Source: Oopsacas minuta
Lineage: Eukaryota > Animalia > Porifera
Direction: 5' to 3'
NCBI GenBank assembly: GCA_024704765.1
Contig: JAKMXF010000066.1
Coordinates: forward strand, 813,854 to 877,853
DNA length: 64,000 nt
The notes beneath the pieces were generated by a model. It was not told where the DNA came from and did not search any database. It saw only the letters and a list, made by a program, of their open reading frames with translations. Both the position numbers and the translations under genes were made by a program. Of the stretch, positions 13,541 to 63,600 are shown piece after piece. Every line of letters begins with the position of its first letter. The stretch's first letter is position 1.

Positions 13541-14407
13541 CTAGAATAATTGTAACTTACAATTATGACACACAGTAAGTATAGTTCCAAATTGAGAGAT
13601 ACAAATACCAAATGGATGAGTAACTTTCTCCAAATAATGTCCTTTGCCCCTTATGGCATGGATTGGTTCCCCTGAGGGAGAAAGTATCTTGATACACTGA
13701 CGGGAATAATCGGTAATGAGAATATTCCCTGCTGGATCCAAACAGAAGAACAATGGGTTCAAAACCATACCCGCCCGCCCCTGAGTAACACACGAGTTTA
13801 TTAGGTGTCCATTTCTAGAGAAGAAGTGGACACAATTCGGACTCCCGTCTAGCACTACTATGCTGTTTGGAGTTACTTTAACGTCTCTAGGATAGTTCAG
13901 CTGATGAGTACCCAAATAATTTATGAATTTAAGTTCATTTGAGTAAATACAAACTCTGTGATTTATATTTTCAGCCACATACACATCTCCGTTATAGTCT
14001 ATACAGAGCCCACGTGGATGAGTTAGCAGTCCCTCTCCTGATCTTGTGGCATCAGTCCTCGCTACATTGAAATCACTGAATTGGAACAATTGGTAATAAT
14101 AGTTCGTAACGAAGACATGATCTTCTGTTACTGCTACTCCGTAGGGCCTCCTGAGTATGCCTTTTCCAAAATTAGTGACGAAGTTACCCTCAAAAGTAAC
14201 AACTTGTATACGCCAGTTACCAAAATCAGCTATGTATATCAGCTGATTAGGTTCATATATAGCTAGACCTCTAGCAGAAAGTAGTTCATTATCTGCTCCC
14301 CCCTTCTTCCCTACAGCTATGACAGGCTGGCTCTTGAGAGAGTAGTGCAGCTCCCATTCTTTCATCTCAGCAGACATACGAGCATTCTTTGATTGTTGTT
14401 TTCCCAT
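13541..14407 (-). CDS. Stand-alone NHL-repeat beta-propeller protein, copy A
   Basis: NHL blades ([48 protein letters not shown]); single exon; starts MGKQQS. Confidence 0.9.
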   Translation of the reverse strand: MGKQQSKNARMSAEMKEWELHYSLKSQPVIAVGKKGGADNELLSARGLAIYEPNQLIYIADFGNWRIQVVTFEGNFVTNFGKGILRRPYGVAVTEDHVFVTNYYYQLFQFSDFNVARTDATRSGEGLLTHPRGLCIDYNGDVYVAENINHRVCIYSNELKFINYLGTHQLNYPRDVKVTPNSIVVLDGSPNCVHFFSRNGHLINSCVTQGRAGMVLNPLFFCLDPAGNILITDYSRQCIKILSPSGEPIHAIRGKGHYLEKVTHPFGICISQFGTILTVCHNCKLQLF

Positions 14408-14687
14408 TTGTTTATTGGAGTATAGTTTATTAGAAATTATATTAACTAATACAGATTATATTTATACTTGTGTAACTTGAGAATACCAATTGATGTCAAT
14501 GGTTGCTATGGTAATTTCAGAAATGTTATTGACTGAATTGTACATTTTAAAATTAGATATAAGAACTAGTGTTACTGAAATTACCATAGCAACCATTGAC
14601 ATCAATTGGTATTCTCAAGTTACACAAGTATAAATATAATCTGTATTAGTTAATATAATTTCTAATAAACTATACTCCAATAAACAA

Positions 14688-15530
14688 ATGGGAAAACAAC
14701 AATCGAAGAATGCTCGTATGTCTGGTGGGATGAAAGAATGGGAGCTGGACTACTCTCTCAAGAGCCAGCCTGTCATAGCTGTAGGGAAGAAGGGGGGAGC
14801 AGATAATGAACTACTTTCTGCTAGAGGTCTAGCTATATATGAACCTAATCAGCTGATATACATAGCTGATTTTGGTAACTGGCGTATACAAGTTGTTACT
14901 TTTGAGGGTAACTTCGTCACTAATTTTGGAAAAGGCATACTCAGGAGGCCCTACGGAGTAGCAGTAACAGAAGATCATGTCTTCGTTACGAACTATTATT
15001 ACCAATTGTTCCAATTCAGTGATTTCAATGTAGCGAGGACTGATGCCACAAGATCAGGAGAGGGACTGCTAACTCATCCACGTGGGCTCTGTATAGACTA
15101 TAACGGAGATGTGTATGTAGCTGAAAATATAAATCACAGAGTTTGTATTTACTCAAATGAACTTAAATACATAAATTATTTGGGTACTCAACAGCTGAAC
15201 TATCCTAGAGACGTTAAAGTAACTCCAAACAGCATAGTAGTGCTAGACGGGAGTCCGAATTGTGTCCACTTCTTCTCTAGAAATGGACACCTAATAAACT
15301 CGTGTGTTACTCAGTGGTGGTCGCATATGGCTTGTATGCCATACTTCTTCTCTTTGGATCCAGCAGGGAATATTCTCATTACCCATCATTCCCGTGACGA
15401 AATCAAGATACTCTCTCCCTCAGGGGGACTAATCCATGCTATATCAGGGAGAAGATATGTAAGTGGGGAACTTAATTCCATGAGGTATTTGCATCTCTCA
15501 ATTTGGAACTATGTTTGTTTTATCTCTTAG
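14688..15530 (+). CDS. NHL-repeat protein copy B, inverted twin of copy A; last blade frameshifted
   Basis: Near-identical to copy A up to NSCVTQ. The conserved [12 protein letters not shown] lies in another frame behind a TGA at ~15480. Confidence 0.8.
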   Translation: MGKQQSKNARMSGGMKEWELDYSLKSQPVIAVGKKGGADNELLSARGLAIYEPNQLIYIADFGNWRIQVVTFEGNFVTNFGKGILRRPYGVAVTEDHVFVTNYYYQLFQFSDFNVARTDATRSGEGLLTHPRGLCIDYNGDVYVAENINHRVCIYSNELKYINYLGTQQLNYPRDVKVTPNSIVVLDGSPNCVHFFSRNGHLINSCVTQWWSHMACMPYFFSLDPAGNILITHHSRDEIKILSPSGGLIHAISGRRYVSGELNSMRYLHLSIWNYVCFIS

Positions 15531-60463: not shown

Positions 60464-60625
60464 AGATTGTTTATTGTTTACAGATTGTGTATGTATATAG
60501 TTGTTTGTTTATATTCATATGGTTAAGAGTATGTACAATCAATTCTTGATATATCTAACCTCAAAGGTCCACAAATACGACTCAATATTTGTTATTCTTA
60601 AGTCTTCAGTTAGCTAATCAGAGAT

Positions 60626-63600
60626 ATGAGTAATCCTCAGGACGAGTTCGATAAGGCTAGAGCTTATCTACTGACATCAAGTGATGTGTCAAATATTAAT
60701 CTGTAAGTACTTTTGTGTGTTGTTGTTGTTGTTATTATACTCTCCTCCATCTAGATACGATCACCTTAGTACTTGTTTGAAGAAGGTGTTATTAGAGAGA
60801 CCCAATAATGCTGTAGATTATATAGAAGATATTAGCAGGAAGATTAAGAGGGAGAAATTGACCGCCAAGACAGATTCTCTAGTGGTTAGTTGTGTATTAC
60901 AATATGGTGTACAGTGTGTAACTTCTCATAAACGGGCCTTTGGAATGTGGAATTTCTGGAAACAGCGAATTCCTAGTCACATACGAATCAACCTCCACAG
61001 ACGGGAAATGGTTCAATTTCCCGTTTTTAGAGGTTACATTGTTTCTGGTATTATGGATAATGGATACTTAACACTAATTTATCTAATTAGAATGAGCCTG
61101 GGGCCAATAGCGAGGCGGTACTAGCAGAGGTACACAGGGGGCTATTCACACCTCCAGCGGGTGATGAACAGGAGAGATTAGGTGAGGACGATGCCTTGCC
61201 CCCCTACCCTAATCTCCTGGAGCTGATCGGGTACTTAGAACAGGGAGGAATAGGTGTCGGAAAGACAGAGGCATTTAGGATATTTTTAGCACTCAAACAG
61301 CTGACTGAATCTCATAAACTCCAATCTGTTAGATTCTGGGGTTAGTTTCTTTATTTGTTAATTGAAACAAACAAACAACTAAAATGATTGTAAAATGGAA
61401 TTATAACTAAGCACGAATAAAGTTCCTATTTCTGAAATACAGATACCAGTTGGCCTCTCACAACATATTATAGTGTGTGTTAGTTCTCCTGAGGGAGAGA
61501 GTATCCTAATATTTTGACGATAATAATCACTCATAAGAATATTTCCTGCTTGATCCAAGCAGAAGTATAGATGTTCATACTGGCCAAACCACTCATGGGT
61601 AACACACGAGTTTATTAGGTGTCCACTTCTAGAGAAGAAGTGGACAGAATTTGGACTTATGTCTAGCACTACTATGCTGTTTGGAGTTACTTTAACGTCT
61701 CTAGGATAGGTCAGCTGATGAGTACCCAAAGAAATTATGAATTTAAGTTCATTAGAGTAAATACAAACTCTGTGATTGTTAGTATCAGCTACAAACACAT
61801 CTCCGTTATAGTCTGTACAGAGCCCACGTGGATGATATAGCTCTCCCTCTCCGGATCCTCTGGTACCAGTCCTAGCTACATTGAAATCACTGAATTGGAA
61901 CAGAGTGCAGCAATCAATATCTGTAACTAAGACGTGATCTTCTATTAATGCTATACCCCAGGAACTCTTGAGTATGTCTTGTCCAAAATTAGTGACGAAG
62001 TTTCCCTCAAAAGTAACAACTTGTATACGACAGTTACCAGAATCAGCTATGTATATCAGCTGATTAGGTTCATATATAGCTAGACCTCTAGGTCCACATA
62101 GTTCATTATTGGCTATCCCTTTCTTCCCTACAGTTATGACAGGCTGCTTCTTGAGAGAGTAGTCCAGCTTCCATTCTTTCATCCCAGCAGACGTACGAGC
62201 ATTCTTTGATTGTTGTTTTCCCATTTGTTTATTGGAGTTTAGTTTGTTAGAAATAATATTAACAAATACAGAATAGACTCTATTTATATTTGTGTAACTT
62301 GAGAATACCAATTGATGTCAATGGTTGCTATGGTAATTGTGTATTCTAATTTTAGTAACTTTATTCAATCTATTCCTTGTATTATCATTCGTTTCTTCAG
62401 GAAAGATATTCGGGACTGTTCGTAACTTTATAATAGCAGAATGTGAGTTTGTAGAGGGAGAGGGTATGGAGGACACCACAGAGGAACAGGCGCCAGATAC
62501 AGGGGACCAAGAAACAGCTGATAAGGATGAGGATGCTACAGAGGATAAGGAGGAAGCTCCCCCTAAGCCTAACTACAAGCCCCCGCCTGTTATACCCAAA
62601 GAGGAATTCGGTACTGGAACTAATAAGAAAGTGTATTTTGTATGTAATGATGGTGAGTATTGCTGTTGTTATTGTTTGTTTCTTTGTTATTATTATTATT
62701 ATTATTATTATTTTGTAGCTGGGAGTGGGTGGACTAGACTACCGCCTATAACACCCACTCAAATTATCGCAGCTAGACAGATTAGGAAATTTTTTACAGG
62801 AGATCTGGCTGCAAAGGTAATTATTTCTCAGATCAGCTGTTTATTAATGACTGGGTTTATGTACTTACTCAATTATTGTATTTTCACACCTTATAGGTAT
62901 TCAGCTATCCACCATTTCCTGGAAACGAGGGGAACTATTTGCGAGCGCAGATCGCTCGAATATCCGCAACCACCCATATATCTCCTAGTAATTTCTATCT
63001 GTTTGATGCTGACGAGGAAGATGAGATGGATGCAAGAGACACATTTGCTGTTAATGAGGAATTTGAGAATATTCCTGTTAATGAGCTTGTTGATGACTCT
63101 CTGTCTAGATGGGTACATCATGTACAGTTTATTCTACCACAAGTATGTACAGTCAATTCCTGTTATATCGAACACGGATATATCGAATACCCGCTTATAA
63201 CTGTATATTGTTATAGGGGAGGTGTGTCTGGTTTAATCCCCTTGAGAAGCCAGATGATCAATTCGATGATGAAGATGAGGACGATGATGACAAAGATGGA
63301 GCAGATGAGCCACAACCAGAGGAAGGTCCTCCTCTCCTCACCCCTCTTTCTGAGGACAAGGGTATCTGTCACTTTTTCTATCCATTATAATACAGTCAGG
63401 TTATCTGAGTGTCCACAGGATGTGTTCGCTGGTAAAATTATTGCGACCGCTATCCTATCTTATTGATTAATTGAGGTCAATGATTTGTTTCATTAATTAG
63501 ATCCTGACTGTATTTAACAAGTTATATATCTCCTTTAGAGGTCGATGGAATGCCCAGCTGGTCACCTTCTCTAAGTAGTAGTCTAATACCCAGCTACTCT

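Follow-up and report, generated by a model that had tools for sequence, protein, structure and literature searches.

Copies of host genes at new sites are known from Helitron gene capture, processed retrogenes and nested genes that arose by DNA-level insertional duplication. Helitrons are recognized by a 5′ TC, a 3′ CTRR that follows a GC-rich hairpin, and insertion between a host A and T. They make no target-site duplication (TSD), and the ends of Helentrons are short terminal inverted repeats. Retroposition gives 5′ truncation, and a LINE-mediated processed retrogene carries a poly(A) tract beside its TSD and does not bring a copy of its promoter. Target duplications of variable length are typical of target-primed reverse transcription.

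Here, a 64,000-nt window (the whole stretch of DNA that was analyzed) of Oopsacas minuta contig JAKMXF010000066.1, starting at position 813854, was compared with these systems. The window contains six intronless NHL genes of ~1 kb, a solo 5′ module and an internal fragment. A first-pass annotation viewed the gene as a non-autonomous Helitron/IS91-like element, with its 5′ motif as a fixed origin and a variable terminus, mobilized in trans. The locus is probably better described as a multigene family of short-form intronless NHL-propeller genes, specific to the O. minuta lineage and shaped by DNA-level copying and gene conversion.

A dispersed family of NHL-propeller genes

The 30-nt motif ATTACCATAGCAACCATTGAYRTCAATTGG is matched exactly at 14486-14515(-), 14580-14609(+), 33529-33558(+), 46445-46474(-), 47557-47586(-) and 62308-62337(-), and no exact match is expected in the window by chance. 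A degenerate form is found at 39421, in copy D. These matches and the alignment of the copies uphold the earlier inventory of six intronless copies, a solo 5′ end and an internal fragment. The features are as follows:

13541-14516 (-): copy A; promoter module, 5′UTR and intact 288-aa NHL ORF (CDS 13541-14407)
14517-14578: A/B spacer; 62 nt, separating head-to-head copies A and B
14579-15530 (+): copy B; C-terminal frameshift (2-nt deletion, last ~25 residues out of frame)
30634-30764 (+): internal NHL fragment, a relic
33367-40512 (-): SYMPK intron, ~7.1 kb; splice sites predicted from coding-sequence continuity
33529-34512 (+): copy C; intact, 291 aa, within the SYMPK intron, 162 nt from its acceptor end
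39421-40397 (+): copy D; intact, 288 aa, degenerate X-box, within the SYMPK intron, 115 nt from its donor end
~45510-46475 (-): copy E; one frameshift near 46100-46130, last third very divergent, intergenic between striatin and SYMPK
47524-47587 (-): solo module S; X-box, CRE and ~20 nt, in a striatin intron
61343-62400 (+): RSPH4 intron holding copy F; an RNA contig joins 61339 to 62401
61344-61358: left candidate TSD of F, TTAGTTTCTTTATT, overlapping the RSPH4 5′ splice site
61359-62352 (-): inserted segment of F, ~994 nt
61379-62338 (-): copy F; intact 281-aa ORF (CDS 61379-62224), in the RSPH4 intron
62353-62366: right candidate TSD of F, TTAGTAACTTTATT

Beyond the window, copy H lies ~5 kb upstream, followed by a second solo module and a repeat of the A/B-type spacer, and copy G lies ~360 bp downstream. 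Among the family members are the intact genes A, C, D, F, G, J and M, the disabled copies B, E and H, one relic fragment and three solos. The Pfam NHL assignment (PF01436) holds for every full copy, with scores of 64-75 bits for four copies as compared to a gathering cut-off of 20. Confinement to local clusters, which had been put forward as an argument against mobility, is mostly what is seen, since the close subfamily forms a dispersed ~70-kb cluster, but older singletons occur elsewhere.

Four copies had been placed in SYMPK or RSPH4 introns. This is correct for C and D, which share the SYMPK intron with a DnaJ/TM2 gene, MCLC and GAPDH, and for F in RSPH4, but copy E lies in the intergenic space that separates the striatin stop codon (~46937) from the first SYMPK exon. 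Solo S occupies a striatin intron of ~167 nt (~47462-47628) and reads in the same direction as striatin.

Gene conversion over old copies

Homology at the 3′ side fades no more than ~20 nt past the stop codon in every copy, through a degenerate GT-rich stretch, and identity declines gradually from 5′ to 3′ inside the coding sequence. The variable 3′ terminus of the first-pass annotation is thus not a feature of these genes. Between copies A and B, identity is 99-100% through roughly two-thirds of the CDS and 77% thereafter. Copies C and G, 31 kb apart, are 100% identical over ~300 alignment columns (440-720) and 67% identical in the last third. Nearest neighbors along the gene reveal H to be a mosaic of D-like, C/G-like and A/B-like stretches. 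A permutation test on the longest identical runs gave p≤0.001 for the pairs AB, BH, CG, CH, EF and EG; the tracts are patchy, often internal and not anchored at the promoter module.

Synonymous divergence follows the same course. The dS is 0.0-0.1 over codons 1-100, 0.05-0.27 over codons 100-205, and 0.4-0.9 from codon 205 to the end in most pairs (0.16-0.22 for A-C and A-J), and dN exceeds dS in the homogenized part. The ~110-bp promoter and 5′UTR are better conserved than the coding sequence. The 5′-to-3′ gradient can be explained by gene conversion acting over old copies. The rise of dS in the last third, together with the significant tracts, indicates that the copies are old and their flanks decayed, which is why their edges look abrupt.

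Copy F in the RSPH4 intron

The RSPH4 intron is spliced across F in the RNA contig, and the orthologous intron of the closest relative (L011) is ~57 nt long and empty. The inserted segment consists of 13 nt upstream of the X-box, the promoter, the ORF and ~20 nt past the stop. Its candidate TSD is 14 nt long and A-rich and is not significant in a shuffle test alone (p~0.17-0.27), but it is supported by position, as an intron of ~50 nt is regained when the insert and one of the repeats are taken out, and the right-hand repeat resembles the ancestral intron start GTTAGTAC of the relative. Only F has a plausible TSD; no significant duplication was seen at most copies, which are old.

A duplication of this kind would also be left by retroposition, for example from read-through transcripts begun upstream of the promoter, whose cDNA would carry the promoter and insert with TSDs of variable length. 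We consider this route unlikely. The family is intronless in an intron-rich genome, the 14-nt A-rich repeat at F is in keeping with such an origin, the 3′ ends of all copies coincide and copy J is 5′-truncated. However, neither a poly(A) tail nor an A-tail remnant or A-tract follows the 3′ end of any copy, confirming the absence of poly(A) reported earlier, and the copied unit takes in the X-box, the CRE and the TATA box. With the TATA box inside, the promoter would not be carried by normal transcripts. In the solos it is the 5′ part that survives, whereas retroposition truncates copies from that side. The A/B/H duplication also took in an inverted partner module, something that would not be found in any single transcript. 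The RepeatMasker table of the genome paper also lists 0 LINEs and 0 SINEs, along with 0.66% LTR elements and 148 rolling-circle elements, although unclassified repeats make up 18% of the genome (PMC10280926 supplement).

Empty orthologous sites in related sponges

Related assemblies, taken from ENA records with ORF-type gene calls, were compared by synteny. The DnaJ-MCLC-GAPDH nest in the SYMPK intron is conserved in L009 and L010, and neither assembly was found to have an NHL gene where C, D and E lie in O. minuta. The NHL genes of both occur instead just past the 3′ end of SYMPK, where O. minuta keeps only the fragment at 30634-30764 and where one related assembly has two tandem full-length genes. 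Judged from this position, the fragment is a relic of an ancestral NHL site at the SYMPK 3′ flank. An NHL gene at the G position is found in L011 and L014. All short-form O. minuta copies form a single clade (support 100/99), and all O. minuta copies lack a ~120-aa N-terminal region that is kept in the other assemblies. By these comparisons, spread to new nearby sites took place in the O. minuta lineage. The proposal that the gene spread with its own promoter to new sites, including introns, therefore stands, with the sites of C, D, E and F free of NHL genes in related assemblies; insertion polymorphism was not seen in the one sample examined.

The same distribution could in principle arise with no spread at all, if the copies were ancient at every site and lost in related sponges, with conversion mimicking a single O. 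minuta clade. Conversion is strong enough to erase orthology, the unconverted last third is old (dS 0.4-0.9), and an ancestral origin does hold for the NHL genes at the G position and beside the 3′ end of SYMPK. Even so, this explanation is quite improbable, as the genes at three or four sites would have to have been lost independently from two or three assemblies, cleanly and with no remnants. The spacers have normal lengths (~390 nt in O. minuta after removal of C, 403 nt in L009), the empty RSPH4 intron is of standard size with the repeat flanking F resembling an insertion scar, and the loss of the N-terminal region is common to every O. minuta copy.

The sharp 5′ edge coincides with a promoter edge

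Each copy starts with a compact promoter of ~110 bp that combines an X-box-like site, a CRE palindrome and a TATA box with a conserved 5′UTR. The X-box-like and CRE-like elements noticed earlier are parts of this promoter, with putative sites for RFX/CREB-type binding. J is the exception and is without the module. Copies begin with (A/G)ATTACCATAGC, although the start of shared sequence is 3-6 nt further in for G and K, and the edge agrees within 0-6 nt across ten copies. Mean pairwise identity rises from ~0.40 (background) to 0.95 within ~25 nt, which bears out the abrupt start of homology, and the boundary falls at the outer end of the X-box.

The module recurs, with its distance from the ATG unchanged, in paralogue M (63% amino acid identity, 700 kb away), in P0083 on another contig and in three other sponge assemblies, whose modules are 75% identical to those of the O. 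minuta copies. Homology among paralogues extends further upstream than the boundary. The youngest duplicates, the A/B and H loci, have 56-62 nt in common past it, and the A/B spacer is 85% identical to the spacer upstream of H over 100 alignment columns upstream of the boundary. Past the boundary, F, E and C have weak, marginal similarity (p 0.05-0.2) to the upstream sequence of other species. The fixed boundary with unrelated sequence beyond is thus accurate as to the sharp edge, but the boundary is partly variable, being crossed at A/B/H and missing in J. The motif is a promoter, but it is the family's own and is not common to unrelated genes.

Most likely, the sharp 5′ end marks the limit of an old conserved promoter kept uniform by gene conversion, and is no rolling-circle transposon end. 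Rolling-circle transposition would account for the sharp common edge, the drop in identity toward the 3′ end, the 5′-only solos and the lack of significant target duplications at most copies, and such elements exist in the genome (148 in the RepeatMasker table). It is nevertheless very improbable here. The 5′ terminus is AATTACC and not TC, CTRR occurs at no consistent place at the 3′ end (only within the stop-codon context, or not at all) with no conserved hairpin, and the GCGAAGC hairpin of an O. minuta Helitron-like family is absent from the whole window. No inverted repeat was seen between the two copy ends, and no Rep/Hel gene is present in the window or examined flanks, consistent with the earlier statement that no transposase is encoded, which holds for the window and nearby flanks. 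The boundary is the edge of a promoter conserved across species and is passed by the homology of paralogues and of A/B/H; the F insert is flanked by a candidate TSD and begins 13 nt upstream of the X-box; and the 3′ gradient lies inside the CDS, where it follows synonymous divergence and conversion tracts, not truncation.

A system in which a nuclease or recombinase acts on the X-box/CRE palindrome, or in which the palindrome is prone to breakage, so that copying or conversion starts there, would fit the ten-copy edge, the presence of a perfect 12-nt palindrome (ATTGACGTCAAT), the retention of just this module in three solos, and an H-duplication breakpoint directly after the palindrome of the inverted partner, but it is highly doubtful given the unanchored tracts, the start of the F insert upstream of the module and the simpler explanation offered by a conserved promoter, and we know of no candidate enzyme. 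The retention of the 5′ module in all three solos is not predicted by deletion alone. The edge is also tighter than random breakpoints and decay would naively give, which makes a module-recognizing mechanism conceivable.

A model of copying and conversion

The favored account, DNA-level copying with gene conversion, would proceed as follows. The sources would be the ancestral positions in the RSPH4-NIF spacer and at the SYMPK 3′ flank, from which DNA-level copies would have entered nearby sites, including short introns and the spare room in the large SYMPK intron. The likeliest route would be copy-and-paste in the course of repair or replication, with duplications that are tandem, inverted or insertional, and at least one event may have left a target duplication of ~14 nt. 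Neutral flanks of old copies would then have decayed beyond recognition, with purifying selection on the promoter and frequent conversion of the promoter and first two-thirds of the CDS maintaining ~90-100% identity there. Selection and conversion over old copies would explain both why identity falls from 5′ to 3′ and why the 5′ edge is sharp where the first functional promoter element lies. The decay of B, E, H, the relic fragment and the solos would be as expected for birth-and-death evolution. We infer both the copying mechanism and the direction of transfer between copies from these patterns.

A more speculative possibility, to which we give little weight, is that glass sponges have an undescribed copy-and-paste route that would deliver complete promoter-bearing intronless genes to new sites, among them introns of only ~50 nt. 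The route would make target duplications that vary in length (14 nt here), would leave no transposon ends and would operate in a genome where LINEs are not detectable, and the X-box/CRE module may be its preferred start or break point. If true, a host gene family would be semi-autonomously mobile and would drive the formation of nested genes.

Comparison with known systems

The NHL genes resemble captured genes and non-autonomous Helitrons in that copies of a host gene occur at many sites, with a sharp 5′ edge and no transposase of their own. Unlike Helitrons, they have no TC 5′ end and neither a 3′ hairpin nor CTRR, F has a candidate TSD, the boundary is a promoter edge conserved across species, and young duplicates cross it. 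With processed retrogenes that carry or acquire promoters they share the intronless structure, new sites including introns, and variable-length target duplications, but they have no poly(A), possess promoter sequence upstream of the TATA box, leave solos that are 5′ fragments, and reside in a genome without reported LINEs.

Nested genes formed by DNA-level insertional duplication are also similar, in that a promoter-bearing intronless gene lies in a neighbor's intron, its junctions marked by a short direct repeat and free of transposon ends; here, however, several events occurred in one neighborhood and empty orthologous sites are observed. Birth-and-death families with interlocus conversion likewise show a lineage-specific clade, significant tracts, pseudogenes and relics, homogenized parts beside old diverged parts, and dN above dS in the homogenized part. 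In contrast to such families, the NHL copies form no tandem array but are dispersed over ~70 kb, some of them between unrelated housekeeping genes and some within them, and their homogenized unit includes a ~110-bp promoter and 5′UTR conserved better than the coding sequence itself.

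Copies of the NHL-propeller unit

A 30-nt motif occurs exactly six times in the window, as compared to none expected by chance, and a degenerate seventh occurrence is found at 39421. Six ~1-kb intronless NHL-propeller gene copies (A, B, C, D, E and F) are resolved by ORF lists, by repeat families and by multiple alignment, together with one solo 5' module (S) and an internal fragment. Pfam NHL was assigned to all full copies. The inventory proposed by the first-pass annotation is sound and beyond chance. Open reading frames are intact in A, C, D and F, with one frameshift in E and a C-terminal frameshift in B. 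Outside the window, copy H (ATG lost, frameshift present) lies ~5 kb upstream and copy G ~360 bp downstream. A further Oopsacas minuta copy, J, does not have the module, and its homology begins ~45 nt before the ATG. Three additional, more distant family members carry it.

Further O. minuta family members with the upstream module
M: 700 kb away, 63% amino acid identity
K: on a 7-kb contig
P0083: on another contig

In DNA contigs from one sample, the summed depth of the conserved part is ~10-20x that of adjacent single-copy sequence, consistent with ~10-20 close copies of the unit. RNA depth is high over the family-conserved part, and the copy-specific last third of F has no RNA contig. The O. 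minuta genome paper does not mention NHL genes (PMC10280926), and a literature search for NHL expansion in sponges and similar insertion mechanisms yielded nothing specific. Public gene models are distorted by the copies (window 12047-18277, 30921-33378, 40480-46400 and 60626-64153): SYMPK and RSPH4 are each annotated as two genes, split at NHL copies, and A, B and E are annotated as fused to neighbours' exons (508, 403 and 960 aa products with faint NHL hits). The public SYMPK and RSPH4 models, split or fused around NHL copies, are annotation errors.

Gene conversion along the copies

In the alignment of the copies, nearest neighbours switch along the gene. C and G, with 31 kb between them, match at 100% over ~300 columns (440-720) and at 67% across the last third; for A and B, identity is 99-100% and then 77%; and H is a mosaic that passes from D-like to C/G-like to A/B-like. 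When the longest identical runs were tested by permutation, many pairs were significant, with p<=0.001 for AB, BH, CG, CH, EF and EG. Identity is 0.9-0.98 across the promoter and first two-thirds of the gene and 0.65-0.75 in the last third, and for most pairs dS climbs from 0.0-0.1 in codons 1-100, through 0.05-0.27 in codons 100-205, to 0.4-0.9 in the last 90 codons. This gradient, together with the conversion tracts, indicates that the copies are old and that their 5' two-thirds have been repeatedly homogenised. At a neutral divergence of 0.4-0.9, and with indels, the flanks of the original duplications would no longer be alignable, so abrupt edges are expected under any copying mechanism. 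Among C, D, F and G (G in locus L005), several pairs have dN far above dS in the first third, codons 1-100 (C-D, 0.134 vs 0.008; D-G, 0.123 vs 0.008); amino acid differences remain there where silent sites were homogenised.

The 5' boundary is a promoter edge

Mean pairwise identity climbs on the 5' side from 0.40 (background) to 0.95 in the space of ~25 nt, and the shared sequence opens with the outermost base of the X-box-like ATTACCATAGCAAC, with a scatter of 0-6 nt among copies. Downstream of the X-box, the module contains a CRE-like palindrome (ATTGACGTCAAT), a TATAAATA box that lies ~60 nt from the ATG, and a leader that is conserved. Six copies (C, D, E, G, H and K) have TGACGTCA as their CRE core, and A, B, F and S have TGACATCA or TGATGTCA in its place; these variants are CpG-to-TpG/CpA changes, as expected from deamination of methylated CpG.

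The first-pass annotation had taken these edges for the fixed 5' and variable 3' ends of a mobile cassette of the rolling-circle type. At the 3' side, homology is gone within ~20 nt past the stop in all copies, inside a GT-rich stretch, so the terminus is not variable, and the appearance of variability is an artefact of the conversion gradient.

The 5' edge was likewise found to have another origin. In L007 (ENA ERZ25069837), a locus from a related sponge assembly, four tandem NHL genes with ~60% amino acid identity, whose products have an N-terminal extension of ~120 aa, are preceded by AGCAACGATTGACGTCAATTGGTATTCTCAGG..., a TATA-like box and the leader found in O. minuta, at an unchanged distance to the ATG, and the L009 and L011 assemblies also have the module at a matching ATG distance. 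Over ~110 nt, the O. minuta module is 75% identical to the other assemblies' promoters, which are 88% identical among themselves. Judged from these alignments, the non-coding ~110-bp X-box/CRE/TATA module is better conserved across species than its encoded proteins. Similarity among the L007 paralogues extends 50 nt or more upstream of the X-box, so the X-box edge is no boundary in that species. Within O. minuta, an inverted solo module is present at the H locus together with a 56-nt spacer that is 85% homologous to the 62-nt A/B head-to-head spacer, and past the H stop codon there is another solo module, accompanied by a ~35-nt repeat of that spacer. By sequence comparison, then, homology in young duplications, the youngest event being A/B vs H, runs across the supposed fixed end. 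Beyond the boundary, F, E and C match the upstream sequence of other species in short collinear stretches, at marginal significance (p 0.05-0.2). Given the cross-species conservation and the homology between H and A/B that crosses it, the fixed 5' end is not an element terminus; it is the edge of a conserved promoter that selection and gene conversion have kept, with saturated flanks beyond it.

Copies nested in host genes

The RSPH4 coding sequence (...VRFWG / KIFGTVRNF...) continues across 61343-62400, and an RNA-derived contig from run X4 joins 61339 to 62401, which places F antisense in a real 1058-nt RSPH4 intron; the NHL unit makes up all but ~80 nt of it. The SYMPK coding sequence is continuous from the exon ending at 40513 (...HEKEE) to the exon starting at 33366 (VCSLGYELL...), so that C, a DnaJ/TM2 gene, MCLC, GAPDH and D lie in a predicted 7.1-kb intron. 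S is located in a ~167-nt striatin intron, and E is intergenic, in the striatin-SYMPK spacer. Landing in introns, as originally claimed, is thus borne out for F in a spliced intron and for C and D in a predicted one, and does not apply to E.

The SYMPK region was compared with L009 (ERZ25071281) and L010 (ERZ25072730) by way of MCLC orthologues. The DnaJ-MCLC-GAPDH nest occupies the same SYMPK intron in both assemblies, and neither has an NHL gene or module at the C or D position, nor does L009 at the E position, which it alone reaches. The L009 spacers at the C, D and E positions are 403, 233 and 402 nt. NHL genes are found in L009 (two, in tandem) and L010 just past the SYMPK 3' end, at the position where only a 131-nt relic is left in O. 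minuta. L009 has, in addition, a distant NHL gene (19056-19961, minus strand; 28-30% amino acid identity) without the CRE part of the module in a different SYMPK intron, whose O. minuta counterpart measures no more than 169 nt, and intron landing has therefore occurred independently in another species.

The nest of DnaJ/TM2, MCLC/CLCC1-like and GAPDH genes in one SYMPK intron (window 33367-40512; L009 8355-13186; L010 7559-15572) is common to at least three glass-sponge assemblies and is thus ancient, its O. minuta-specific parts being only the two edge NHL genes. Campbell-type integration into SYMPK of a circle that carried DnaJ-MCLC-GAPDH between two NHL copies, to account for the C...D block, was rejected, since the same nest occupies the same intron in two assemblies lacking C and D.

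The RSPH4 region was compared by way of its P450 neighbour with L014 and with L011 (ERZ26869290), the closest relative available (P450 82% amino acid identity). In L011, the orthologue of the intron that hosts F is empty, with a length of ~57 nt (GTTAGTACTGG(TGT)n...CCAG). Both L011 and L014 have an NHL gene at the G position, indicating that G is at an ancestral site. In a maximum-likelihood tree, the short-form O. minuta members A, C, D, F, G, J, M and P0083 form one clade (100/99) that excludes the other assemblies' genes, even the positional orthologues of G, and the N-terminal extension is lost in all short-form O. minuta copies.

Insertion scars and other repeats

A systematic search for direct repeats between flanks turned up no significant case at A, B, C, D, E, G, M or the C...D block, and the flanking repeat of H is the trace of a tandem duplication (p<0.01). 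On either side of F stand TTAGTTTCTTTATT and TTAGTAACTTTATT, a weak candidate duplication (shuffle test p 0.17-0.27) whose left repeat begins at the second base of the intron and whose right repeat resembles the relative's intron start, GTTAGTAC. The insert so delimited spans 61359-62352 and begins 13 nt upstream of the X-box; removing it with one repeat copy leaves a 50-nt intron, the modal size of RNA joints (51, 51 and 52 nt). S is flanked by AAGGTGTTA, also a weak candidate repeat, which overlaps a highly repeated palindromic intron element and so may not be an insertion scar. No source match to the non-cassette parts of S and F was found in any fetched locus. In one sample, DNA contigs span the F junctions with no skipping joint, and no alleles lacking F were seen; run X5 represents a second organism, ~96% identical, with fragmentary contigs.

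A ~30-nt palindrome, AAAAGGTGTGAAAATATGATTAATCATATG, recurs in both orientations in short (~50-nt) introns of unrelated genes, where it supplies GTGTGA or GTGTCA as the 5' splice site, and may represent an introner-like or MITE-derived intron family.

Occurrences of the AAAAGGTGTGAAAATATGATTAATCATATG palindrome
Window 59679-59709
Window 22872-22900
Window 42177-42203
Window 46533-46560
Window 47485-47516
Locus L004 9699-9728
Locus L004 15318-15347

At 59523-59709, summed contig depth is ~20x single copy, with many different flanks. A small MITE-like element at ~40672-40768 in a SYMPK intron has inverted ends ACTCCGATTAATAGGGACAC ... GTGTCCCATTAACCGGAGT, and related ends occur at ~13369, ~8682 and ~47791-47890 (near the copy A 3' flank; striatin). 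The RSPH4-intron stretches 63076-63262 and 63637-63823 have a contig depth 5-10x single copy, which marks them as further short dispersed repeats.

Mechanism of spread

The copies are probably the product of repair or replication copying at the DNA level combined with gene conversion: whole promoter-plus-gene units would be copied into introns and into the spacers of neighbouring genes, and would then be kept alike by conversion. An RNA route for the NHL copies is unlikely, as no poly(A) is found at any copy, the TATA box lies inside the copied unit, and the RepeatMasker table of the genome paper lists 0 LINEs and 0 SINEs (PMC10280926 supplement). The same table has 148 rolling-circle elements and 18% unclassified repeats. 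Ancient residency of the copies, followed by losses in other lineages, has a still smaller chance of being correct; the empty sites, the tree and the shared N-terminal loss together show, within the assemblies compared, lineage-specific spread with some contribution of concerted evolution. Movement as a Helitron-like element is highly improbable: the copies have no 5' TC, conserved 3' hairpin, CTRR or terminal inverted repeats, the GCGAAGC hairpin of this genome's Helitron-like family is absent from the whole window, and neither a transposase nor a Rep/Hel gene is present in the window or across the ~100 kb of flanking sequence retrieved. The earlier observation that the window encodes no transposase extends to those flanks. 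The rolling-circle end is not supported. A mechanism that recognises the module is just as improbable. What is retained of the mobile cassette is the copying of promoter-plus-gene units to new sites, including introns; no rolling-circle or transposon features were found.

Copying of whole units at the DNA level, followed by conversion, would describe how a fast-evolving candidate recognition family grows in a glass sponge. The birth of a nested gene in a 50-nt intron is documented here with an empty orthologous site, providing a dated comparative example, and the ~110-bp module constitutes a testable regulatory element. For genome scans, the family serves as a warning that a razor-sharp boundary of dispersed copies may be the edge of a promoter and not the end of a transposon.
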